Shown here: positions 2,101 through 20,100 of the stretch, in pieces
How positions within the stretch are numbered: position 1 is the stretch's first letter
Layout: each line of letters starts with the position of its first letter
Assembly (NCBI GenBank): GCA_965637545.1
Contig: OZ281498.1
Location: 20,212,001 to 20,276,000, forward strand
Source: Phallusia mammillata
Lineage: Eukaryota
Length of the DNA: 64,000 nt
Direction: 5' to 3'
The notes under the pieces: generated by a model
What the model saw: only the letters and a program-made list of their open reading frames with translations
What the model was told of the DNA's origin: nothing
Databases searched by the model: none
Translations under genes and position numbers: made by a program

Positions 2101-5100
2101 GTAAACTATATATCTTATTAAATTGAAATTTAAAACAATCATTATTTACTATTGTCGACCTTTTGCAGTGTTCTTAAGTTTATTTTAATCGACGTTTTAC
2201 TCTATTTTGTCTCTTTCAGTTCTGATGACGTCACAGCGGGTCACTGGTGCGTCACTAAGCGCACTGTGACGAAAGAATCGGTGGTGACGCAGCGTCAGGA
2301 ACGGGCTGTGTTGTGTTTGGATCTCTACAAATTCGTACAGGGCGGTTGGAAGTATGACGAGCACAGGATGAAGGTAGGAACCAGTGAACCGTAACGATTC
2401 ACGCAGTGTCACGTGATAACGCAAAACTTGAAATGATATTTGTGCTTGAAAATATCAAAAATACGTTTAAGCTGCAGACAGTGCGCATTGTTGCTACCTA
2501 TGAGGTCTCGTCAGTGCAACTGCGTGGTGACGAAAGATATTATATTGGATAGTGTAGCCATCCAATTAAACGTTTGTTAGGTGTAAGAGAAAACTACAAA
2601 AAATACGTTTGAATAATAAGGTTTTCTTAACTGGGGTCTTACGCTCAACTTTATGCGTTGTCTATTGTAACATTAAGTGCAGTACAATTTAGTTAAGCAA
2701 TAAATAATATAATTACGTTTTTCGACAAAAATTTCGTTTAAAATTTGGAGAAAGATTAAAATGGTTTGGGAGAACTGAGTTCAACCCCATTTAGATTCTA
2801 ATCAAAGTATACATAATACACTTTTCAATTGCACTACTAGTCAAATACAAGATACAAATTCTTTCAGGAGCGACATGGAGATCAGGAGTCGGTGTCAAGC
2901 TATTTTTTTAAGGAAGGAGCAGGCGCAGTTTGCTACGTATACATCCCAGAACGAACACTGCATTATAACGTCACTGATGACGTCAGAAGTTGTTGTAAAG
3001 GGTGGACAGGAGAACAGTGCAGCACACGTAAGCCATTTTTGCTTGCTTTTTTATATGCGCTGAACAGCATAAAAATGTGAGACAAAAAATATTATTATGT
3101 TTATACTTAGGAACACTCTCTATAAACACCGGTTCCTTGGCAGTTATGTTTATGATTAAACATCTATATACCTTTCGTATTTTATGTAAACGCGTACAGT
3201 TTATGACACGAAAAAGTAGATGATTATCGAAAGTACAAACATAATCACATAATATGTCGCCATTTATTGCATCATCGTAACAGTGTAGCAGACCACATAA
3301 AATAAGTTAATCTCTTTCGTAATCACATAACTAATTAGCCATTGTTAACCTGTACTAATAGTACCTGTACTGTAACATGTAAGGCTTACATTGTAAGCTT
3401 AATAGATGAATGTGTCAACCCGTATTATATGCTGTAATACAGTTTTTTAGGATTTAGTGAACGAAGTTATTAAATCTACACTGTTTGTTTATATGTTTTT
3501 CAATTGACTTTGTTTATCAATCGCTTTTTATCTAAATCTTTTAGGTCACATACCACTGGGAACATGCTTTTACGAGCACGACTGCTTGACATCAACAAGC
3601 TCAACGTCATACCTAATGACGTCACAAAAACATCGCGCGTTTTCTATGGAAGCTTGTTGCAGCCTGTTGGCGGGAAAATCGTGGCGAAATGTTGAAAACG
3701 AGTTCGAAAAATGCGAAGTTTGCAACAACAGTTTGTCTGAAATTGAGACACAACCTGGAGAAAAAGGTTCTTTACATTTTTTCCAATATTATCTTACAGT
3801 TTTTTCCTTTTCTTTTGATCAAAGTTGTTGACATTTTACTGTTTCAGCTGAACAGCGACGAAGCTGCGTTTTGTGGGGCAAAGGTCACGTGCATGGATTT
3901 GGCGGAAAATCCCGAACTATGTCAAGCACGTGTGCTCAAAGATTGGCTGCTTCTCATGACGGAAGTTGGTAAGAACAAAACCACCAAGATTTTAGCATAA
4001 TTTTTACTAATAAATAATTTTGTGTGATTCATGTAAATATGGTTTTACAGGTGAATGCATTTAGCATAATTTTCACTAATAAACAATTTTGTGTGATTCA
4101 TGTAAATATGGTTTTTACAGGTGAATGCAAAAAGCATGCTTGGGAACCCACTATTTGCGTTAAATAAACTTTTCCGTATTTACAGGTGGATTGATGTACA
4201 GCGGCACAATTGCTCTTCGACCGAAGTTGTGTGCCCTAAGACCGCTCGAATTTCATTCGCTGATGACGTAATCATTACGCTGTCGGACGATTACGTCTAC
4301 CTAGATGACGTAAAGATTTCTTTAACCTCCACGCAAAACTATAAAGGTGCGTAGCACTTGGGATGATATGTTGGTGTAAACTGAATGTTAAGTTTAAATG
4401 GCTGACTGCATAAAGCGGGTTAAGTAAACCAATTTTACTCAAACTGCGTCGTTCTTATAATAGACCACACCACATTCATTCGCAGGTGTCCTGTTAAGTA
4501 AGAACAGCAATTTTTTAACTCTCGTATCTCCGAACGGAATAAAAGTCAAATACAGCAAAGAAGTTGTTGTCGTCACCACTGATGACGTCAGTAATGGACG
4601 AGGACTTTGTGGTCACCTGGATTTCGTCGAAGATTTGTTTGTCCCAGGTAATTTAACTTTATTCCTAACCAACTAAGTATTGAATAAAATTACTTGAGTA
4701 ATAAGTATTCGTATCTAACATTTTTAACAAAAACTTCTGTACAGACTTTAAAACTATACAATTTTTATAGATGTCATCAAATCAGGTGAGAATAATGCAA
4801 CGACCCCTCCCCGATTTTCATCACGTGATTGCCGAAGCGTGGACGTGACGTCATACGATGAAGAATGTCCCCAGGATTCGAGACATTATGAAATGTCGCA
4901 TGCGGCTTGTCGCTTTCTGATTGACGATGACGCGTTCCGCAAATGCCACCGTATTTTTGACGTCACCCCGTTCTATGACGTGGGTTCAAAGGATCTTTTT
5001 AACCATTGTTTAATAGCTTATATATATACATATATCTACCACTAAGAATAAATCCAATGTATCAAACTTTTAACATTGTATGTTGCAATACAGGCGTGTG

Positions 5101-8100
5101 TACAGTCTGTCTGCAAAAGCATGCTTGCGACCAATCCAAACCACGTGATGCAACGATGTCAGGTGGCAACTGCTTACGTTCTCAAGTGCGCCGCCAGTGG
5201 TGGTCACGTCGAAACTTGGATGGAAAGAATGAACTGCTCATGGTCATGCCCTGACGGTCTGGAATTTCGGGATTGCGTCACTACGTGCCCCATGACGTGT
5301 GACATGCCCGACGGCGACTCCTCCCCATATTGTCATGACGACTGCACACCCGGATGTCAGGTATATACGATTTGTCCACATTTTATAAAAAATCTTTCCA
5401 ACCGAATTTTTTTACATTAGTGTCCGAGTGGCAAGCTGGTGCACCGTCAGTTGCGTGATGATGACGTCATCGTGACGTGTGTGACGTCAGACTCGTGCCC
5501 GTGCAAGCATCGCGGCCGCTTTTACCAACGTGGTTCCGAAATTGCTGAGTCCTGCAACACTTGCCGTTGTGAGAAGGGCGGCACGTGGTCTTGCTCTATC
5601 AATCAGTGTCAAGCTGTGTGTCACGTGATTGCTGCCACGCATGTTCTAACTTTTGACGACGCCAGGATAACTTTGCACAACAATCGCTGCCCCTACAATA
5701 TTCTGTTACAAACGGAACACCCAACTTTGACCTCTATTCGGGTTGCCATGGATTTAGTGACGTCAAAATCAGACACTTACCTTTATGACGTCAACGCTGT
5801 GCACGTCACAATAGGCAACGATGAGGTGAAACTGAAGCGAAACATGGAAGCCACTATTAACAACGTGGAAATGAAATTGCCATTTAGGTATGAGTCACTT
5901 CTATTTAAACCTAGTTTTTTGTTCTGTTATAAATGCACTGGCCTCAAAAGTTCAATTGTAACAAATCTAAAACCATACACTGTTTTCTAAAAGGTTTGCA
6001 TTTTCGTAAAAGGCACCTACTTTATCTCATTCAAATAGAATCAATAAAGCCTAATTTGCTTTTCGTCTTCGTTGAATGTTTCTTTTACTTTTTGGTGCTC
6101 AGAAACAAGTTGTTGTCCGTGAGACACGCCACAACACAATCGTTCATTGTGAGATCTCTCGGCTTTCAACTGGTTTGGATTCCTGAAACTGACACAATAG
6201 ATGTGACCCTTGAGCCGATTTATTCCAATAAGGTAAAATGACTTTTGTTTGAAATGTACACCTTAGCACTATGCCTTCATTTTTCATAAAAAATCTCCAC
6301 AAAACATTAAATTTGTCACAAAAAATTATTTTCACTAAAATTGCTCATACAAATTATCAAAATCTATGTGTATAAGGTTTCAAAAATACAAGAGAAGTTT
6401 TGGATTAGACTTTTGTTCGGCAACTACGTATCTTTACCATTACCCAATTTTCCCCAGGTTGTTGGAATCTGCGGCAACTATAACTGGAAGCCGAGAGACG
6501 ACTTTACGACACCAGAGGGCGACGTTGAGACTGTTGCTGAGATCTTTGTGCAGCATTTCCAGCTGACAAGTTCGTACATTTGATTTACCTACCTATGACG
6601 TCATACCTATTTATGAAGTCACACCTATTTATGACGTCATATCTACTTATGACGTCATGCCTACAGTTGACGTCATTTAGCGTGTGTACAAACTAAAGGA
6701 CACACTTGATCTTTTGCAGGTAGCGGAGAAAAGTGTCCGCTAAGCATGGACACTGATGACGACATGATGACGTCAGATCCCTGCTTGACACACACGCAGA
6801 AACGTGAAGAAGCCATGCGCGTATGCGGGCTGTTTTCTAGCGACATTTTCAAGGTATTTACAAAGCAGTTTAGCAGGCCGCAGGCCATGGTTGGGTTTCA
6901 ACTTGTGCCATCGTCTGATGTTCGTAAGGATGCGGGTTCAAATCTTAACAAGTCCGCACTTATGGGTGTTTATTAGATTGGATTAGCACGTTTCTTGCAT
7001 TTTGTTCGTAAAATCATAGAAGTATGTATTTTAGCTACATGTGATAAGCAAGACAAATGACTTGTGATGCAAGTCTTAGTTTTACGATGCAATTATCAAC
7101 CGAAGTCCTTTGTCTGATTTTGTTTCCAGAAAAAAAAATGCATATTAAATGATGAAATGCTTATGATGCACACGCAGAAAATCTATTACGTGTGGAGTAT
7201 TCAATACCAAAGATAAAACAAATGAAATAAATTTAAAACGCGACTCATACATTTCTAATGTCTATAGGATTGTCGTTCAGTAGTAAATGAAAAGGAATAC
7301 AGACAAGCCTGCTATTATGACGTATGTTCTTCAATCGACGTCACACCTCGATCAGCGTGTCGCTCCATGTCCGCTTACGTCACTGCGTGTTTGCAACAGA
7401 GCGACGGCGATATGACGTCACCAGCTATGACGTGGCGTCGACACACTGATCTTGATGGAGCGTGTGGTAAGTTTTATGTGAGCATGTATACGCAAAATAC
7501 ATTTCTATGGTTGACCGAAAGTTGGCATAAACCATTATGGGCCTCATGTCAATTCTAACATTTATCTTAGTACGCCTGGCGTGGAATGATTTATACATAA
7601 GTATGCCTGGTCTGGACGCTTCGGGGCTGTATTCATCTTAACTGATACTAGTCACTCTGGTGATCCCCTACTACTGAAACGTGCAGCGTACGAGACAGGC
7701 AACGGTGCTTGTAATTCGACTTTCGACGGGTTCACCACTGTGCCTCTGTAGCTTAGTTGGTAGAGCGCTAGTCCCGAAACGACTCCTGTCGTGGGTTTAA
7801 ATTCCACCGCCGGCTAGATTTTTCTGGTCTGTGCCTTGCAATATGGGAATGCTTGGGCCTGGCGTACTATGAACGTTTACTTTACATTTGTATATCCGTT
7901 GTTACAGTTGCAAATGTTGTGTGTGGTTACCAGTTTAAATAGGATGTAGTATACAATAATCGATAGCAAATAAACAAGTTTAAAACTGTAAATTTTCTAC
8001 AAAAACTTTCACAGACGTGATGTGTCCTTCCTATCTGAACTTCAACGAGATCCAGCCCGTAGCTACGTCATCGTGCCATGACGTCAGCAGGCCCATGCCC

Positions 8101-11100
8101 AGTTACGGCGACGCGGGTGAGCGGACGATATTTTATCCGGGTTGCTCATGCCCACCAGGATACAGATTATCCGCTAAAGGCGCGAAAGAGTCCATTAACC
8201 CCGTCATGGAGTCAGTTTCCCGAGGTGAATTCAATTGGTCGAAAGCAAACTGTATCGCTTTGTGATTGGTTGAAATATAATGAAGTTTTTTTTTCAAATT
8301 AAATGCAGGCGGAAACACAATTAACCTGATTTTGTACTGTTTTATCCAACAAAGTTCTTTTAATAGGCCTTTCCAGTCGCGGATTTGATCTGTTTGGAGA
8401 AGATGCGACGTGCGTTTCAGTGGATGAGTGCCCGTGTTTTACACGTGATCAGGATTTTCAAGCTGGAAGCAAAATGAAGACTGGTTGCGTTGAATGGTGC
8501 GTATTATATGGTCTAAACTTTGGTGTTTCTATAAAGTAATCAAACAACAATCCTTCAATCCATTTGCACACGCTCTTTTGAATTTGAACAAACTTATTGG
8601 GGAAAATATATCAGATAAATAATTTGGGCTTTCGAAATAAGCGAATGATTTTTGGATACAGAATTTTATACGTATATCACAAGTTAACATTAAACGAAAG
8701 TCTGTCTGAGATATTCTTCTGGCAAGTCGTTGTACAATTAATTCGACCTATCTCTGAACAAATGCACATGGATAGGTTGTATTCATTGGTCAATGGCGGT
8801 TGCCACATACTTCGAAACAAAGCAGCCATCTTGTATTTTGCTTCACAAGTTGTTTGTTTAATTTCACCTACCATTATACCCCATATATGTTTACTCCGAT
8901 TTTTGTTTTACACCAAAGTGATGACGGCTGAATTGGGTCTACAAATAGTATGATAGGACCTCTGTTTCGATACTACGCGTTAACACGCCTGGCTAACCAA
9001 GATTTTGCTGAAGGTTTTTCATATTAAAGCAAACAAATTTTATATGTATGTATATGCAGGATTTTTTCTGAATTTTTTTTTCACGGGGTTCGAACCCAGG
9101 ACCCACCAATAGACAAAAACTATAAGGGTCGGGCGCCTATAAATTTTGAGACTTCAATCTTACAACCTAATTTATCACCCCTTCGTATTTTACAGCATTT
9201 GCATTGCCGGTAAATGGAATTGCTCATCAGAGATGTGTGGCGCCACTGTGCGGTGTCCTAACAATTTGCAATACAGCAGCAAAGTGACGATATGCGACCG
9301 TAGGACGTGTGAAAGTTTAGGGAGGACCGCTTTAATGCAAGATGCAGGGGACTGTGACGACGAACTGACTTTCGAAGGATGCAAATGTCCCGAAGGAATG
9401 GTCATTGAGGTTTGTGACTTCCTAAAATTTTGTTGCGCGTAAGTCTGCTAAAGACGTTGATTGCTAATTGATCCCTCTAAATGCCTAGAACCACTGTACA
9501 TAGCATTCTGATTTAAAAAAAAACTGGTCATGACGTCACATGGTTGAATAATACGACTCTAGTTAAATGATGCTTTGTTGGGTTGCTTGTTTTATTGTAA
9601 TCTCACCTGAATGCAATATGGCCACATAAGTCCGCTGTGTTGCCAGGTTGAGCTTATGTTGCCCAATTGGGCTACTTTTTGAAATTGAGTTGGGTGTTGC
9701 GCCTTTTTGGGCGGGTTTTTGAATGACATTTCTGCCTGTGTCATTGATAGTAGGGATCAATTTCAATTTTGTTTCAAAGCTTAAAAAGTCGTTTACGTGA
9801 AATTTGCTTGAGCAATTAGGACTTGTTTAAAACAACGCCTGCCTAAATACATTTTACTCAAAGAAAAACAAAATTCATCAGAAAAGAATATAACCCATAA
9901 CCTAGTATTAAAGGCCCGGCCATTCTCTTTTTTAAGGCTCGGCCTTCTTTGCGAATTAGAATTTGGAAGAATCTGAATTAAATCGCACCAACCCATAAAA
10001 CAAAATCTACAACTTGTTAACCAGCATGACCAAACCTTCTTACATCAAACAAACATGACTATTTGCTGTTGTTCTGTTGTCACATATAACTCGCATAGTT
10101 TGAAATTGTAAAATATGAGCGCTATCTCTTTTATGACTGGGACAGCCTTTTAATATTTGCTTTCATGTCGTACACGGTTTTAATCTGCTATCTTGTTCCG
10201 GGCGGCGGGAAACTATTTAATACACGGCAGCATTTGACATGGTCTCTGTTTGCAGAAATTTCGAAACTGCAACGTTTAATTTATTTTGTAGAACAAAATT
10301 TACAAGTCGGGCAATGAAAGCGAGACAAGACGCCAAAAGCAAACATAAAAAATATTTACACACCAAACAATTGAAAGTTGGTCCCTAGTGATTTGTTATA
10401 TGATAGCTTTGCAATGGTAAATGATGGTTCTCAACCGGCTTTAGGCATTCACATATACTAGCTTTTTCCCGTTATGCAAGTGTAAATGTGCTGACAAAAT
10501 GACCGATTAAATGTCAATGGTTGACTACATCAAGCTTGCTTGGCAACCCGCTTCAAGCATAGTTGCGTACGTTACAATATGGTACCAAGTGGTTGCCTGC
10601 GTTTGTGCACATGCAAGTTTTTCAGTCAAGTCATAATCAAAGCGCCACAGTTGGCTACATAAACGTTAGTAGATCCGGTTTAAGCGTGTTAAGCGTCCAT
10701 GTATAACAAGCACTACAGATGACCACACAAAAAGCACCAACGAAATATACCCTTAATAATGCAAAAATTTTACATGTAGCAAGCGCTTTGGTTGACTGCA
10801 CGAATCTCGTTTGGAAACCCGTTTAAGCAAGGTTACTAGTTTCGTTGAAAAGAGTTGCAGTGACGCACGCCGATACGTCCAGTTGCCAAATTACGTCATA
10901 GGTGACATATTAAACGCGCCACGGGAGCCATCCGTTGATGCCAAATATTGTTTGCTTGGAAATAGGCCTCGTTAAAACGTTGCGGAAACCAATGAATGAT
11001 TTTACAACATTGTACTCTAAGGAAGTTGGAAAACTACCAAGTGCAGTTTAAAACACCCAGATACACTTAACTTGTTAAGAGTAACGCAGTTTGACTTTGT

Positions 11101-14100
11101 ATAAACGCTGTTTTAAACACCCACTTTTTACAAACAACCAACAGTGGTGTAAAATTTATTCGCCTCTACCAAGCGTTTTGCGTGTTTAATTTGAAATACG
11201 CCAAATCGGGTGTCTGCGTTTTAGGGGTGCAATTAGCACCTCATTTATTCTATGGGGTTTGGGGGTACGAAGAATAGGTACTCGCTTACCTGACAAAATA
11301 AAAAAATGAGGGGGTTTGGTACCTACACACACAATTTTTCAATGAACGTGCCAATAGCGCACGAATAGCCCAGAAGAGAAAATATAACTGCAATATCCAG
11401 TCAGAACTCAATTGCAAACAATCTGCGGCTAGAAATATTTAAACCTTTCAACGCATTCTTTGTTGGGCGGTTTATGCCCAAATGTATATACATGTATTTA
11501 TGAAAGGTGGGCGCATTATATGAAAACTATTCTTTACCTCCCTTGTAGGAAAGTTCAATTGTTACTTCATCCTCATTTGGTGTTGGCAATTGGATTTGGT
11601 CATTAGTACTGGTTAAATCCGGTTTAAACTGGAACCAAGGGGCTTCTGGCCCAAAATCACCCCATATTACTTTTAATGACCACTTGCTGTCTTTCTTGAT
11701 GACGTTAAACATGACATCAAACTTTTGGTCGTCTTTTTGGATTACGTATTTAGCTGTGATGGAATCCGACTGGCCAGGTCCAATTCTTACGATTTTATTT
11801 CCGTTTCCCGCGATTTCCTCAGGGAAAATTCCGCCCTCGGCTCCCTTGTCGAGTTGCCATGGATACGGTGTCATGTTGCTCAGTTTAAAACAAACTGTGA
11901 CGTCATTTGCGGGCGTGGGGGGTGCGGCTGACTTTTCTGCGAACAGAAGTTGGTCAAAATAGGCTTAAAAGTGATTTACAAAAACTTGCTTAAAATTCAA
12001 TCGAAAAAAAACAAAACACAGATCTGCGAAAAAATGTTGAACATTTGAAAGCAAAAAGTAAAATGCAAATGATTTGGAAAAGTCGTAGTAAAAATGTTGC
12101 TTGCCTGTGTCATTAAATGGTGTTTAAAATAAACTTGTTGCCTAGAGTCGTGTCATACAAAAACGTTTTCGATATTGACGCCAATTTAACTCAAACCGAA
12201 TTATTAAGCATAATTCCACCGAGAATGAAACGGAAATGCTGCGACTCGCCAGGGACTTTGTGTTTTTTTAAATTTATTGATTTAAACTGTTGCCAAGCGC
12301 AAGAAGTCACGTGACAAAAACAAATGAAAAGGGTTGCTAGGACTAGCTCTATCCAACCAAGCGAAAAAAAAATTTTGAACCACTCTCCGAATTGGTTTGT
12401 GCTTTAAACATGTTTTATATTTAAACAGTTTGTTGAATGTTTTGCGTTCTATATTGTACACAAAAAACGTGCTGCCTTGATCTAAAGTAATATCCATGCT
12501 CGTTAACTGGTTCGGCTGTGTATAGTAAAAATGTTTCGTCTTCAATACTTTGCTCACTTGTCTTGACGGGAGAAGTAGTTCCCAGTCTGTGAAATTGTTC
12601 TGGGGCACTTGCCACCTCTTGCTTCTTCTTATTCTTAGAACCAGACAACTTGTATTTGGACGATTTAAAAAAGTTCATTTTTTTAAGAAATAAGATACAA
12701 CGTTTAATTTACAATGACTGAAAAAAACGCATAGTTTTTATATCGGTTCTCAAAAAGCAAAAGTTTTCTAACATTTTCGCAAAAGTGGCCAGTGTAAGTC
12801 TATTATTAAATCGCTACGCAACCCGTTTTTGTGTCACCTTAGCTATGTTACCACAATAAACGCGGTTTCATACCTTACATTCGATTCAAGCATTTTTAAC
12901 TGAATTTGATTGAGCAATGTAGCCCCTAAATAACTTCAAAGCTTTTTCGCAGTTTTGTATGAATTTTATTATTTCGAACTTCTATAAATTACGTATGCCC
13001 TTCAAAAGAAAGTTACTTCGTAATCTTTTTCTACAAGAAACCTTTACAATGCTGATTATAGTTTTACAGCTTTGGTAAGCGCTTGCCCTTATTGCTTTTA
13101 ATACATAATACACATAAACCTACAATAATCGGTACCTCAATTGCTCAATATACCGAAGGCAGTGTCAACCCAGCGTTCAAACACTTCAGTCTCAAGTATC
13201 TACGACTTAAAACAACTTTAACCGCCCTATTGGATGTTGTTATGAGCGTCGGGACAGACAAGTACTTTATCACGGGGCCGCCCCAAATCCGCTACTCTCA
13301 TTCCCCATGGCAAAGAAGCACTTGAGCTCAAAGACGGCTGACCAAACTTCTGTTGTGCTAATATTGTCCTTCGGGGCGTACTCTAGCTCCATCTTTATGC
13401 CCACGAGGACATTTTAATGGCTCTAAATCACGGTTTGCTTGTTGGAACTCAAAATAAATTGCGTCGCTGAATTTAAGATAGATTGTGATACGATGGTTTA
13501 TGTGGTAATGTGAAGTTATATATAGCTGACTTTTCAATTGTACACATGCTAATTTTGTTGCTTATGCCAAATTTATTCAAATAAAAAGCCCATTGTGATT
13601 TTGACGCTTAACGCTGTGATTTGTAAAGGATTTATCAAAATTTAAACAGCACGCGCCTGATAAAATATTTAACAGCGGTTTTGCATCGAACGGCATTTTT
13701 CGCGATTGCTGTTGACAACACTGCTTTACATAGAACACAACCGGCAGATTTTGAATAAATCTAACAGATTTGCTTTTAGCCTTTATAACAAACATGCGAA
13801 ATTGCATTGATACGGCTGGCTGCGCTAAATTTGTTAGATTCTAACCGAATGTTCAACAATGACTGGCTGTAGTCAGTTGACTTTTATTGATAACCTATTA
13901 GCCAAATGCAAACACGTCCCACCTGTTCCAGCACACATATGGAACCTTTTTCCCAATGACGGAGGCGTCAGTACTAACCACAAGTCCTAACCTATTCTTA
14001 TGTGTTATAAATTGCCTCTACCCATAAACTTTATCATTTCGACCTCGCCCGAAATCCCAATAGGTCTTGGTACTCGGTTAAAAGTTAGGAGAAAAGTGAA

Positions 14101-17100
14101 ATGAGTTTTCAAAGGAGTGGCCTATGAAATGTCTTGTCTTGTAGCATAAGGCATAAAATAGATATTGCTTCTTAAACTCCGTTAGAAGACTCTTTCAGCT
14201 CTGGCAGAATTCTGTTGATTGAAGCACGAATTTGAACATGGATCTTTGTGACAAGTTTTTAGTGTCAAACGCTATATTCTCAGACCCTTTTCCCACGATA
14301 AGAAATATTTTTAATAAAATCACGCATTTTAGGACTTGTTTTAACCTTTTGTCTGCCTTAAGATTCATTTCAACTAAAATCGCTCAGTCTAACATATTCT
14401 TATTGCCAAACTTTCAATTTATTTGGTGAGCCGGCCATCGACTTGTTTTAACGCTGATCTCGACATACATTATGTAATAGTCTAGGTTTGTTCATGTCAC
14501 AATGCTATTTATAACTGAAGCCACAAAGTTCCTCCCGCCCAACTATGTAACCACTATAACCAGGCAACCCAAACCAGCGATCGACTGAAACCTTCACACT
14601 GCCATAAATCACAGAGTTATACGACGCAATGACATCGCATAAAAGCGCTAAAGCATTAAAACTAGCACTTAGGTGCTTGTTTGTAACCACCAAGTTTATC
14701 TAAAGGCTTTTATAAGCTGCTTTTACAACTCTATTTTGATTACAGGGTTATCTGCCAGATGACTTGTATTTAGTAAATGCATTTAGTTGCAAACGCTGTA
14801 ACAATCGCTGCTGTTATTATCGAAACACAGTAACACAACTGCAGGTCTTCGAGGCAGGATCTAGGTAGTAAATGCACCCATTTAATCATTACATACAAAC
14901 TAACTGGCACTAGTGTATTTTGTTTAAGCTATGTTTAGGTATGTGTCAAGTATTAACTGTATTTTAGGTTGTAAAAGCCAATTACAAACACATACTGTGA
15001 CCAAAATTTGCCTTACAACAAAATAACTAACTTTGTCGCTGTTGACTGCACTCGCTTGTTCAAATCTACTATCAATGAGCATCAATAAATTATGTAAAGA
15101 TTGCATTTTTAAACAAGACAGCAAAACATATCTTTCCAATTCCTTACGACTGACATCGGAGTGTCTTGCTAACCAACTTGTCTGAGCCTGCATGTTTACT
15201 CTTTCCGACGGTCTTATGTTGACATTTCAAGACATTGACATATTGGTTGAATGATTTTCTCATTTATACCTCATGCTCCATTACGCCATGTCTAAAATTG
15301 TTCGGTTTCAATTATCATTGGTAAACATCAAATTGAGGGCTATGGATTTCTATTGCTAAATAATATTTGTTTTCTATGTTGCCTGTATTCTTTTGTGAGA
15401 ACACAAACAGTGTTCAAGACAACTGTGCAAACACGCGTGGTTTTAAAACAGGTTGAAATAATTACCTGTGTTTACTTTTAATATATTTGATAGGTATATG
15501 TGTTGGACGTATTAGGTATATGTATTTCTATTTGTGGCATGAAACCCATGGAGATAGGTTTTATTAAGTCAAAAGTTGGAAACCATTTGCTTTTTACTTT
15601 TCAGAATGACAGATGCATACCAATCGAAGAATGTCCTTGTTTACATGCTGGTAAAACGTATAAGACAAACGAGACCATTCAAAGAGACTGCAACCAATGG
15701 TAAGAAACTGTTGTTTCAAAAGATAAAAAAACGGCTAAATATAATCAACAATTGTGAAGTGCATACGAATTAATTGTTCGTGCAAACTAAACTGTTTACC
15801 ACAATTTCGAACAAACATTTCAAAAACAATATTATATTATAAAACAATATTATAAAAAGGTTCCTAAAATATAATAGTTTTAATGAATAACTAGCATGTA
15901 CACACTGGCTGTAAAAAACATAGGTATCAACGTAACAGTAATTTTACAATGCTCTTGCTTTTCAGCATTTGCAAATCCCGAAAGTGGCACTGCACAGAAA
16001 ACAAGTGTTCGGCTCATTGCGTTGCTATGGGAGATCCACATTACAGCACATTTGACGGTGCTCAGTATTCCTTTCAGGTAAAACCATATGTTTTCAAACC
16101 CTATTAAGACGTCTTAGATTAGACCTTGTACTCGCTTTATGGCCGTGTTTATGGCTTGGTTTGCCCACCTGCTGTTCCACTCACAAATTAGGGGACTGTT
16201 TGTACAACAAGCTAAGCCCGTGAATGGAGTTTTACCACAACTATACGACAGTTTAATAACGGACTGAACAATGGCATTCAAATTTGTAGGTACATTAAAT
16301 GCAAATGGTGTAAAACTTGTCCAAGACGCTTGTTTTATTATCTTCAACGACTGTGTCTGCCTGAAGCGTTTTAACAACAACACATGTACATCAACAGTAA
16401 CGAAATATTGCTTAACAGTTATCTACACAACACAACTTGCGTTAATGTGCTGCAAATGTTGCAATACAATTTATCTTCTCAGAGATTCTATGTGAATAAG
16501 GCCCTGATGATGCCATATAGACCAAAATGCATAGTTCTTTTTACCTAGAACTGACTGACTGACTGACTTTGATTTAACCAAGGGTTTAACTTTTAATTCT
16601 CTTTTCAGGGTGCATGCAGTTACGTTCTGACTAGAGAACGAAGCGGTCTGTTCTCTGTCACTGCTGAGAATGTCCCTTGTGGTGCCACCAGGGTCACGTG
16701 CACTAAGTCTGTTTACGTCACAGTGGGTAGGTCTAATAGATTAACTTGGAATTCTTATCACAAAACCTCTTGACAACACTAATTTAGTCCTAGACAGTCC
16801 AATTGAACCATTCATGATGTGTTTAAAACTTAAAGCAATCTCATTGAATTCGAAAGGCTCTCTGTGAGATACACAAGATAGAGAACACAATTCTATTCGT
16901 AGTGCGTAAACCTTAAATGTCATATTATTCTAAAAACCAAAAAGTCAAAATGAACATGTAAATAACAGACACAGACCGTAGCTGCGAACGTATAGATTCG
17001 GGCTCCAATCCAATAACTCTGAAACTACAGCGAAAATGTTTTCTTTGTTTTCTAGCATCAACCGTTATTCATCTCCTTCGCGGCAAGCGAATCACAGTAA

Positions 17101-20100
17101 ACGGAGCGCCGATCGCGCGTTTGCCCAGGCGATACGGAAACGATGACGTCATGGGCGGTGACGTAACGTCCATGGCTATTGATCGGGCCGGAGTGTTTGT
17201 GGTTGCTAGCTGGCCGAACTTGGGTCTTTCCGTGTTTTGGGACGGAGGTAAAGTAAATCATAACTAATGAATTAAAAAATACTTACAACCTAGGTAGAAC
17301 TTTTTCAGTAACGACACAATCGAATTAAATTGTTTCACTAATTAAAATTTAATGCACTGTAGCCAACAGAAATGTGATGCAGTAATTAAACACGTAACAG
17401 TCTTTCAATGGCTTTTTTTGTACACCTTCGTTGAACAAAAAGTGGTTTAATATTTAGGCTACACGTTAATGGTGGGAACGTAGAGAATTTTGAAATTGCA
17501 GTTTTTTAAATCGTAGTATTTTATCTTTACTAGGGTCTGACTGTTTATTTAATCCATGTCATACTTAGGCACTCGGGTCGGTATTCAGTTGGAACCAAGA
17601 CATATGGGAAATGTCTCGGGTCTGTGCGGTAACTACGACGGCAGTCCGGCAAACGACTTCACAACCAGACAAGGCTCCATGGAAACCATGACGTCATCAT
17701 TTACTAATAGTTGGAGGGTGTCACCAGTCTGTTCCGAGTCTACTGACGTAATAGGGTCGTACTTGAATCCTTGTGAGGTAAAATTTGTTGTTGTGGTTTG
17801 CTGAATTTTTTTAGTAATTTGTGCAATATATAGTTAGGGTATTTGCAGCTTGTATGGCGTAATACTGATGATTTCATGTTGCAGGCGAATGTGCATCGAA
17901 TCGGCTGGGCGCGACGAAAGTGTTCGATAATATCGGTCGGTCAAGTTTTTGCCCACTGTCGTTCGGTGGTTCCCCACGACCGATACTACCAGTGGTGTGT
18001 GAATGATGCCTGTGCTTGCGATGGCGGCGGAGATTGTGAATGCGTGTGTACAGCGGTAAGTCAAGTTATTTTGTCTGTTTTGAAAGAATATGAATATGGG
18101 CTACACAAAGGCCACTTTTCCTTATTGTTTAGGATATTTTAAAGTTTATATCTACTTTCGACATTAGTAGCTACTTTTTGCATCTCATGCCTCCTATAAA
18201 AATTTGCTTAGTTATGTTTTTTACTTTCAAGGCATGCTCCTTCCTGTTAAACAAATTACAAAACTGAAGAAATAATGTTTGTAAACCATTTTGCTGTCTA
18301 GTAAAGTATTTTGGCTTTGTACAGGTCGCAGCTTACTCACACGAATGTAACCGAAATAACGTAGCCGTCCGTTGGAGATCTCAAACGTTCTGTCCCATGC
18401 AGTGCGACGGTGGCCAGGTTTACATGGCTTGTGGACCTGCTTGTCAAGAAACCTGTCAGCTCCGAGGTTTGTATTAATAAATATAGTTAAATGGGTCGTG
18501 CTATTTTTCCCTTCCTGAAAGAAAGCTATATATTTTACATTTAATTTAAATATGTAGCGCCAAAAATATCATTCGCACATGTTTAGTGACCCATTTGTTT
18601 CTGCTGGCACAAATAGTTTTGTTGCTATTTGCCAAAAAAGTAATAATTGGTTGACAAATATGTATTTGTCAGTAAATCAAGAAGTATATATGTTTTTTTC
18701 GGGTAAAAATATCACCAGAAAAACATTTTGGAAACTTTTTAGGTCAATCGCTTGGACGCCATTGTTCGGATTTGCCTTGCGTTGAAGGCTGCTTCTGTCC
18801 AGCTGGATTTGTCATGCATGGCCAGCGGTGCGTGAAGGACACGCAATGTCCCTGCTTTTTCGAAGCGGGCGAATTTGCAGCAGGAAGTTATTTGAGCAAA
18901 AACTGTCAAAATTGCACTTGCCAAGCTGGAGAATGGAGTTGTTCGGTAATAAACTTGTTTGTGACGCATGAATAAAACGTAGAACGTTTTGTTGAAGACT
19001 GTATGAGTAAACAGTGCAGTAAGCATTTCTACGGTAAAGTTTGCATTTTTTATCTGACATATTTGTATTGCAAAAGCAGTAGTGTTTAGTTTATTTTCAA
19101 ATTTAGTGTTTAAATTTGAAGCTTTCTTAGAGGTTGTTTTTTAGCAACTGTCAAATCTAACACATTTTCACTGTCGCTTTTTTACAATTTTGTTGTCGGA
19201 CTTCTGTTAATCTTGCTATTTTAACTTACCAGGGCGATGTATGTGACTCATTACTGCCCGCATGTGATTCCGAACAATACCGCTGCGCTAACGGTTTTCA
19301 GTGTATTTCGAAATTATGGCGATGTGATTTTGAACAAGACTGTCTTGATGGTTCGGACGAGATCGGATGCAATCGGACAACTTCGGATTGCCTGGGAATT
19401 TTTGATCACGTGTGTGATGAAAATAAATGTCTTCAAACCTCTAAAATGTAAGTATATTTAGATACCACAAGAACTAGCGTTTGACGAAAACTTTGCAATT
19501 AGATGTGACGGCGTATTTGACTGTGACGATCTCAGCGACGAATTGGATTGTGACGTCATTGTAGGGCCTAACACAACCACTTGTGGCGCTACACAGTTCT
19601 CATGCGTCAATGGAAAATGTATTTCCGGATTTCTGGCTTGTGATGGAAAATTCGATTGCGGATTTGGAGACTATTCAGACGAAAATAATTGTGTACAAGT
19701 ATGTTATTAGATTTAATTTGTTTGCAAACAAGTTCATTTGTACATCATTCTTATAGAACTGCTCAATTCTTCACCAATTCACTTGTGACAACGGTTCGTG
19801 TATTTCGCGCATCGCTTATTGCGACGGCAAACGGGACTGTGTGAACGGCGAGGATGAGATTTCTTGTTTTTGCCCGCCAACACAATTCACCTGCTCCGAC
19901 GGGGGGTGCATCGATCGCTTTATGTTGTGTGATGACGTCGAAGACTGCATGCAAGGTAGGTGACGTCATGCAGTCGTGATGTAACAATCACAAACAATTG
20001 GAAATTTAATCTTAACGTCAATTTAGGCGAAGATGAGTTTGGGTGTGAGGTACAAACAACTCCGTCTACAGCTAGTACTACAAGCCCAACATTAAACACC

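Follow-up and report, generated by a model that had tools for sequence, protein, structure and literature searches.

In a 64,000-nucleotide (nt) stretch of the genome of the ascidian Phallusia mammillata (GenBank assembly GCA_965637545.1, contig OZ281498.1, positions 20,212,001 to 20,276,000 of the forward strand; hereafter the window, which contains no N), we identified a two-exon gene that lies on the minus strand within an intron of the SCO-spondin gene. This nested gene belongs to a new, unnamed sequence family that was restricted to ascidians in our searches and that falls within a known fold superfamily. Judged from its predicted structure, the family probably encodes peripheral membrane binders, in which a basic N-terminal tail is joined to a β-sandwich resembling that of the aegerolysins and the actinoporin core (AF superfamily). 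The parts of the nest in the window are as follows:

9410-15604, plus strand: host intron of SCO-spondin, 6195 nt, with GT at 9410-9411 and AG at 15603-15604
12558-12678, minus strand: exon 1, holding the start codon (40 codons plus 1 nt in all) and encoding the basic tail with conserved motifs including EQFHRL
11937-12557, minus strand: intron of the nested gene, 621 nt, GT...AG, phase 1
11527-11936, minus strand: exon 2, encoding a proline-rich linker and then an all-β domain of ~120 amino acids (aa; predicted aegerolysin/actinoporin-like sandwich), followed by the stop codon at 11529-11527

The nested gene is GT-AG spliced from exons 12678-12558 and 11936-11527, its ATG is located at 12678, and its coding length of 121 + 410 = 531 nt corresponds to 176 codons plus the stop codon. 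The donor GT is found at 12557-12556 (GTGAGC follows exon 1) and the acceptor AG at 11938-11937, and exon 2 is preceded by a polypyrimidine tract and a CAG that ends at 11937. A spliced two-exon open reading frame (ORF) of 176 aa on the minus strand had been proposed in a first-pass annotation of the window; its ATG, its GT and AG sites, its stop codon and its phase-1 junction were all in place. The exons were analysed singly (exon 2 in frame at 11530-11934, minus strand, 135 aa; exon 1 at 12559-12678, minus strand, 40 aa), and the peptide strings quoted in that annotation were all present in the two separate translations.

When exon 2 was used as the query against Pfam, the PDB sequences and a word-index protein search, no match was obtained. 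The family was reached only by an exhaustive HMMER search, which returned six small proteins with phmmer E values from 3.8e-17 to 3.5e-5, and a profile search added two more:

P0002: Clavelina lepadiformis LOC143449525 (XP_076805876.1), 168 aa, phmmer E 2.8e-9
P0004: Ciona savignyi H2Z310, phmmer match
P0001, P0006, P0010 and P0011: proteins from Logan, ENA and JGI contigs, phmmer matches
P0017: Ciona intestinalis LOC104266524 (F6RSX5), added by the profile search
P0016: contig protein (the fifth contig homologue), added by the profile search

The two Ciona proteins reached a profile E value of ~1e-50, and the Ciona and Clavelina homologues are 168-174 aa long and 24-33% identical over the domain. 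The profile of a nine-sequence alignment (A3) recovered the window with an E value of 1.3e-41. Profile searches for further members with E values up to 10 gave nothing beyond ascidian-like sequences, P0016 and P0017 being the only additions, and the family profile gave only chance-level matches against the PDB sequences (a PepSY propeptide, E 0.026; Dscam, E 0.2). Candidates P0003, P0005, P0007-P0009, P0012 and P0013 were bacterial Ig-like/repeat surface proteins and were rejected as a score pile-up over repeats. Thus, the gene is not the orphan that it had been taken for, having homologues in Ciona, Clavelina and five contigs. No paper was found that mentions the homologue accessions or this gene, and the database entries read only 'uncharacterized'.

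Sequence conservation extends over both exons. The β domain of the family shares the blocks CF(R/K)L-N-x-T...W, FP-x-E, VDW and FKPD, and the N-terminal motif MNFFKSxKY...EQFHKL is common to the homologues. The full-length Ciona and Clavelina proteins start with MNFFK(S/K)xKY and carry E(H/Q)F(H/Q)K(L/T), as does exon 1 of the window (alignments A2 and A3), and equivalent first exons were found 5' of the domain exon at four further loci on the contigs (L003, L004, L005 and L007). The N-terminus and the first exons shared with these relatives provide an independent validation of the splice model. We also compared the intron junction in the window, Clavelina and L005. The intron is in phase 1 in all three, after nt 121 in the window, after nt 124 in Clavelina (374 nt) and after nt 127 in L005 (517 nt), and no intron other than a phase-1 GT-AG one at that site reproduced the annotated Clavelina coding sequence. 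At L003:2686-10390 (ENA ERZ25067590), a candidate first exon starting MSLFKSGKYKMGGGG was located ~7.2 kb 5' of the domain exon, and a reverse-transcriptase ORF (RVT_1, 4300-5226, opposite strand) was located between the two nested-gene exons. A retroelement therefore seems to have enlarged at this locus the intron that measures 374-621 nt in the window, Clavelina and L005.

To L005, the closest relative, the DNA similarity of the window was limited to the exons, at 68% across 310 nt and 78% across 67 nt, and the nested-gene intron and the flanks could not be aligned. In exon 2, identities at the three codon positions were 0.71/0.81/0.43, with a nonsynonymous divergence (dN) of 0.31, a synonymous divergence (dS) of 2.2, which is saturated, and a dN/dS ratio of ~0.14. 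The 240-Mb genome contains one copy of the nested gene, whose GC content is 0.42-0.44 compared with 0.33-0.45 in the surroundings. A chance ORF or a transposon remnant was ruled out by copy number and conservation. Taken together, these sequence comparisons indicate that the nested gene is a genuine single-copy protein-coding gene, far beyond a chance ORF.

The host exons on the plus strand, which extend over 5-45 kb of the window, encode C8, TIL, VWD, LDLa and TSP1/TSP1_spondin domains and a C-terminal Cys_knot. This domain set is the SCO-spondin architecture and supports the antisense nesting inside SCO-spondin that had been suggested earlier; the host intron, given then as 9410-15604, proved exact by its splice sites. 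The host exon ending at 9409 had no Pfam match of its own but matched the Clavelina SCO-spondin with an E value of 2e-29, and the exon 3' of the host intron leads into the next VWD domain. No tRNA and no Rfam family was found when the host intron was scanned.

Conservation of the nest was assessed in Clavelina and at L003, L004, L005 and L007, L006 being too short to judge. In Clavelina (L002), the nested gene lies on the opposite strand of a gene encoding a 4141-aa protein with VWD, TIL, LDLa, TSP1 and TSP1_spondin domains. Nine host exons of the window are collinear with this SCO-spondin locus, four on the 3' side of the nested gene (5052-5417, 7268-7555, 8330-8536 and 9143-9439) and five on its 5' side (the first at 15494-15700, the last at 18676-18972), and the Clavelina nested gene is found between the orthologues of 9143-9439 (E 2e-29) and 15494-15700 (E 1e-8). 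Between window positions 5052-18972 and L002:6903-14181, the order and the boundaries of the SCO-spondin exons are collinear, and in both species the nest lies in the longest of the local introns (~2.6 kb in Clavelina and 6.2 kb in the window). As in Clavelina, host exons flank the nested gene on both sides at L007; at L003 they were seen on its 3' side, and at L005 on its 5' side, where the contig then ends. At L004:8279-10369 (ENA ERZ22157276), where both family exons are present, the 10 kb to each side contained no recognisable SCO-spondin exon, which points either to a very large host intron or to an absence of nesting in this organism. Whether other tunicates keep the nest, a question raised in the first-pass annotation, can thus be answered for Clavelina, L003, L005 and L007, where the gene lies in antisense orientation within this SCO-spondin intron or next to it. 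The orthologous flanking host exons indicate that several ascidian lineages have retained the gene in the same SCO-spondin intron, and the nest is older than the split of the Phallusia mammillata and Clavelina lineages. It is plausible that the nest has persisted because a rearrangement removing the nested gene would break the host gene.

To characterise the domain encoded by exon 2, structure models were built with AlphaFold2 (AF2). A single-sequence model was weak, with a predicted local distance difference test score (pLDDT) of 60, and still matched fruit-body lectins, HALT-1, Cry34Ab1, Nakanori and OlyA. It was superseded by a model built from the nine-sequence alignment A3 (covering the product of exon 2), which reached a pLDDT of 82 and a predicted template modelling score of 0.75 and consists of eight strands with no helix. 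When the alignment-based model was searched against the PDB using Foldseek, the top 30 entries were nearly all actinoporins (StnII, E 5.8e-4; EqtII, FraC, bryoporin, HALT-1 and Fav), aegerolysins (Cry34Ab1, with template modelling (TM) scores of 0.51/0.56; OlyA and PlyA) or Nakanori. Realignment of this list with VIA-align gave the same picture, and a search of atlas models returned Anemone_cytotox- or Aegerolysin-bearing clusters with TM scores up to 0.58. Language-model features, which use the sequence only, placed the window protein beside the Aegerolysin, Anemone_cytotox, Nakanori and FB_lectin clusters, and the Clavelina orthologue (33% identical) was placed beside the same four cluster families. 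The predicted domain thus matches the small all-β sandwich of the aegerolysins (13-20 kDa) in topology and has a β-sandwich core as in actinoporins. Since the structural scores are moderate, we regard this as an assignment of fold rather than of family membership. The earlier guess at an actinoporin/aegerolysin-type β-sandwich, for which AlphaFold and Foldseek had been suggested as a check, is therefore backed at the level of predicted structure and by the language-model neighbours, the alignment-based model having matched almost only the actinoporin/aegerolysin/Nakanori fold group.

The N-terminal tail and the sandwich core differ in charge. The product of exon 1 has a net charge of +7, and the N-terminal 40-45 residues of the family carry +6 to +8, have a negative mean hydrophobicity and a helical moment (muH) of at most 0.43, and contain several prolines. 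No hydrophobic 15-residue stretch was found in the N-terminus (maximum Kyte-Doolittle value -0.35), so a signal peptide is absent, in agreement with the first-pass annotation. By these sequence measures, the N-terminus of the family is neither a signal peptide nor an amphipathic helix of the actinoporin type. Two motifs are conserved in the tail, M-x-F-F-K-x-x-K-Y-K-L/M-x-G and E-H/Q-F-H/Q-K/R-L. The basic-aromatic N-terminus (12559-12678; P0002, P0004 and P0017) resembles, in our view, the effector domain of MARCKS, a segment that binds both acidic lipids and calmodulin; we take this likeness as a lead only. The sandwich core is acidic (six of the seven members tested have a net charge between -4 and -8) and contains at most 1-2 cysteines. 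The P-[WYF]-D motif of actinoporins, reportedly described by Gutierrez-Aguirre and colleagues in 2006, was absent from all seven cores when searched as a regular expression (P[WYF]D), and a conserved K-P-D was found in its place. An N-x-T triplet after the first strand is kept in all eight A3 sequences that cover the site. As the protein has no signal peptide, this triplet is probably a structural turn rather than a glycosylation site, barring an unconventional export like that of aegerolysins.

The family was then compared with the known families of this fold. hmmscan of the window protein and seven family members, with E values up to 10, gave no match to PF06355 or PF06369. The two models also gave no match in the whole genome, which is weak evidence as the control genomes gave none either. 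For the aegerolysins (PF06355; Cry34Ab1/Gpp34Ab1, ostreolysin A/pleurotolysin A, RahU and AfIP-1A), the model aligns end to end, covering 107 of the 118 residues of Cry34Ab1, whereas no similarity was found at the level of sequence or profile. Aegerolysins are acidic and have no signal peptide; the likeness in this respect is equivocal, since the core is acidic and no hydrophobic N-terminus was found, but the conserved tail of 40-55 aa is strongly basic and has no counterpart in them. Aegerolysins are small, acidic, β-structured lipid binders that work on their own or recruit MACPF proteins for pore formation, and those described are mainly bacterial and fungal, with no chordate examples named in a review (PMC9505663). 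No MACPF or Toxin_10 partner gene is adjacent in the window, where the neighbours are SCO-spondin exons, and our literature search found no paper that substantively connects tunicates with aegerolysin- or actinoporin-like proteins.

In actinoporins (PF06369; equinatoxin II, sticholysin II, FraC, bryoporin and HALT-1), an amphipathic N-terminal α-helix of ~20-30 residues inserts into the membrane and lines the pore, and the phosphocholine site includes an aromatic cluster (PMC8778704). The structural alignments begin at actinoporin residues 25-32, past the pore helix. Unlike actinoporins, the nested-gene protein has no amphipathic N-terminal pore helix, no P-[WYF]-D, no Pfam match and no signal peptide or propeptide, and the exon 2 model lacks the flanking helices that actinoporins have. 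Conserved W, Y and F residues of the family may form a surface patch comparable to the aromatic cluster. Nakanori (PF21230) and the fungal fruit-body lectins (PF07367) scored below the aegerolysins and actinoporins and gave no sequence match; for the latter, which have a T-antigen/GlcNAc binding site, no PF07367 profile match was found. The uncharacterised Ciona and Clavelina proteins belong to the same family and share the MNFFK...KY N-terminus, without a name or a Pfam family of their own, and the gene in Clavelina also agrees with that in the window in its phase-1 intron and in the intron that hosts it.

On this basis, we propose that the product of ~176 aa has two parts, a strongly basic and probably disordered tail of ~40-55 aa and an acidic all-β sandwich of ~120 aa that would share the predicted fold of the aegerolysins and the actinoporin core. 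In the manner of aegerolysins, Nakanori and fruit-body lectins, one end of the sandwich may recognise a lipid head group or possibly a glycan, and electrostatic contacts of the polybasic-aromatic tail would help to attach the protein to acidic membranes. The protein alone would not form pores of the actinoporin type, and a lytic role would need a partner, as in aegerolysin/MACPF pairs. From the predicted fold, we favour a peripheral membrane protein that binds a lipid or a glycan over an autonomous pore-former, and autonomous pore formation is unlikely; the pore-forming role first suggested for the domain is weakened by the lack of an amphipathic helix, of P-[WYF]-D and of a match to the Pfam model of either family.

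If the protein were nevertheless a self-sufficient actinoporin-like cytolysin, serving as a toxin or an immune effector, its sandwich would bind sphingomyelin-type lipids and its N-terminus would insert and line an oligomeric pore. Actinoporins, some of them in pore states, are indeed the best Foldseek matches (StnII, E 5.8e-4; EqtII, FraC and Fav), and an N-terminal extension precedes the sandwich as it does in actinoporins. However, this extension is charged +6 to +8, with negative hydrophobicity, a low amphipathic moment and several prolines, whereas EqtII has an amphipathic helix, one face of which is nonpolar, and a compared sponge actinoporin-like helix has a hydrophobicity of ~0.6 and a net charge of 0 (PMC8778704). 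No signal peptide and no P-[WYF]-D was found in any family member tested, the Anemone_cytotox model was silent, and a single copy under purifying selection is unlike the typical expanded toxin families, all of which makes a cytolysin highly improbable. A more serious alternative, although still a minority one in our estimate, is a generic β-sandwich that is similar to the AF superfamily in topology only and whose function lies away from membranes, as a cytosolic or nuclear adaptor acting through N-terminal linear motifs, or is that of a fruit-body-type lectin. Against a merely generic sandwich, ~30 of the top 35 entries came from one superfamily with two different aligners, the sequence-only language model pointed to the same four families for each of two orthologues with an identity of 33%, and aegerolysins were covered almost end to end (107/118 residues for Cry34Ab1).

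The first-pass annotation had also suggested that the gene may have been acquired horizontally, and a bacterial, viral or fungal aegerolysin-like gene could have been taken up by an ancestor of the ascidians and inserted into the SCO-spondin intron. Such a transfer would fit the mainly bacterial and fungal range of described aegerolysins, with no chordate examples in the review (PMC9505663), the restriction of the family to ascidian-like sequences, and the nearest unnamed language-model clusters, which are viral or bacterial (score 0.91). However, no significant non-ascidian protein was found except the spurious bacterial repeat proteins, the taxa of neighbouring atlas clusters are in themselves no indication of transfer, and the gene has a conserved spliceosomal intron and a host-like GC content. 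Moreover, actinoporin-like proteins occur widely among animals (PMC8778704), which makes vertical descent followed by divergence an equally good fit. Because the position and phase of the intron are conserved, the GC content matches and no credible non-ascidian sequence relative was found, horizontal transfer is neither needed nor supported; we consider it improbable, and a very old event of this kind is possible.

A more specific interpretation, which we put forward tentatively and would rate at somewhat less than an even chance, is that the family represents an ascidian lineage-specific branch of the AF superfamily that was remade as an intracellular membrane-lipid sensor with a polybasic tail and became locked in one SCO-spondin intron. 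If so, an aegerolysin-like lipid binder would be known for the first time from a chordate lineage and might serve as a new protein probe for the sphingolipids of marine invertebrates, and the intron lock across much of ascidian evolution may tie the expression of the nested gene to that of its host. Aegerolysins and actinoporins serve as lipid sensors and nanopores and inform the evolution of membrane-attack systems, and an ascidian family with this fold and another N-terminal device would broaden the known range of the superfamily. Conserved micro-synteny is uncommon in tunicate genomes; the nest in the same intron across ascidian lineages is a marker of it and can be used for the question of nested/host co-regulation. 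The finding is modest in scale, as the proteins were already present unnamed in databases and the function is drawn solely from the predicted fold.

Candidate signals were also located on either side of the coding exons:

12737-12742, minus strand: candidate TATA box (TATAAA), 64 nt 5' of the ATG, a sequence match with putative function
11244-11249, minus strand: candidate polyadenylation signal (AATAAA), a sequence match and the first canonical one 3' of the stop codon, 277 nt away

Weaker CATAAA variants occur 24 and 50 nt past the stop codon. Antisense to exon 2, two open frames on the plus strand (11684-11962, 92 aa, and 11725-11931, 68 aa) were taken as the usual shadow ORFs. Spliced-leader trans-splicing is common in ascidians, and a TTTTTTTCAG tract at 12718-12727 on the minus strand, ~40 nt 5' of the ATG and directly 3' of the TATAAA, could be a spliced-leader trans-splice acceptor.
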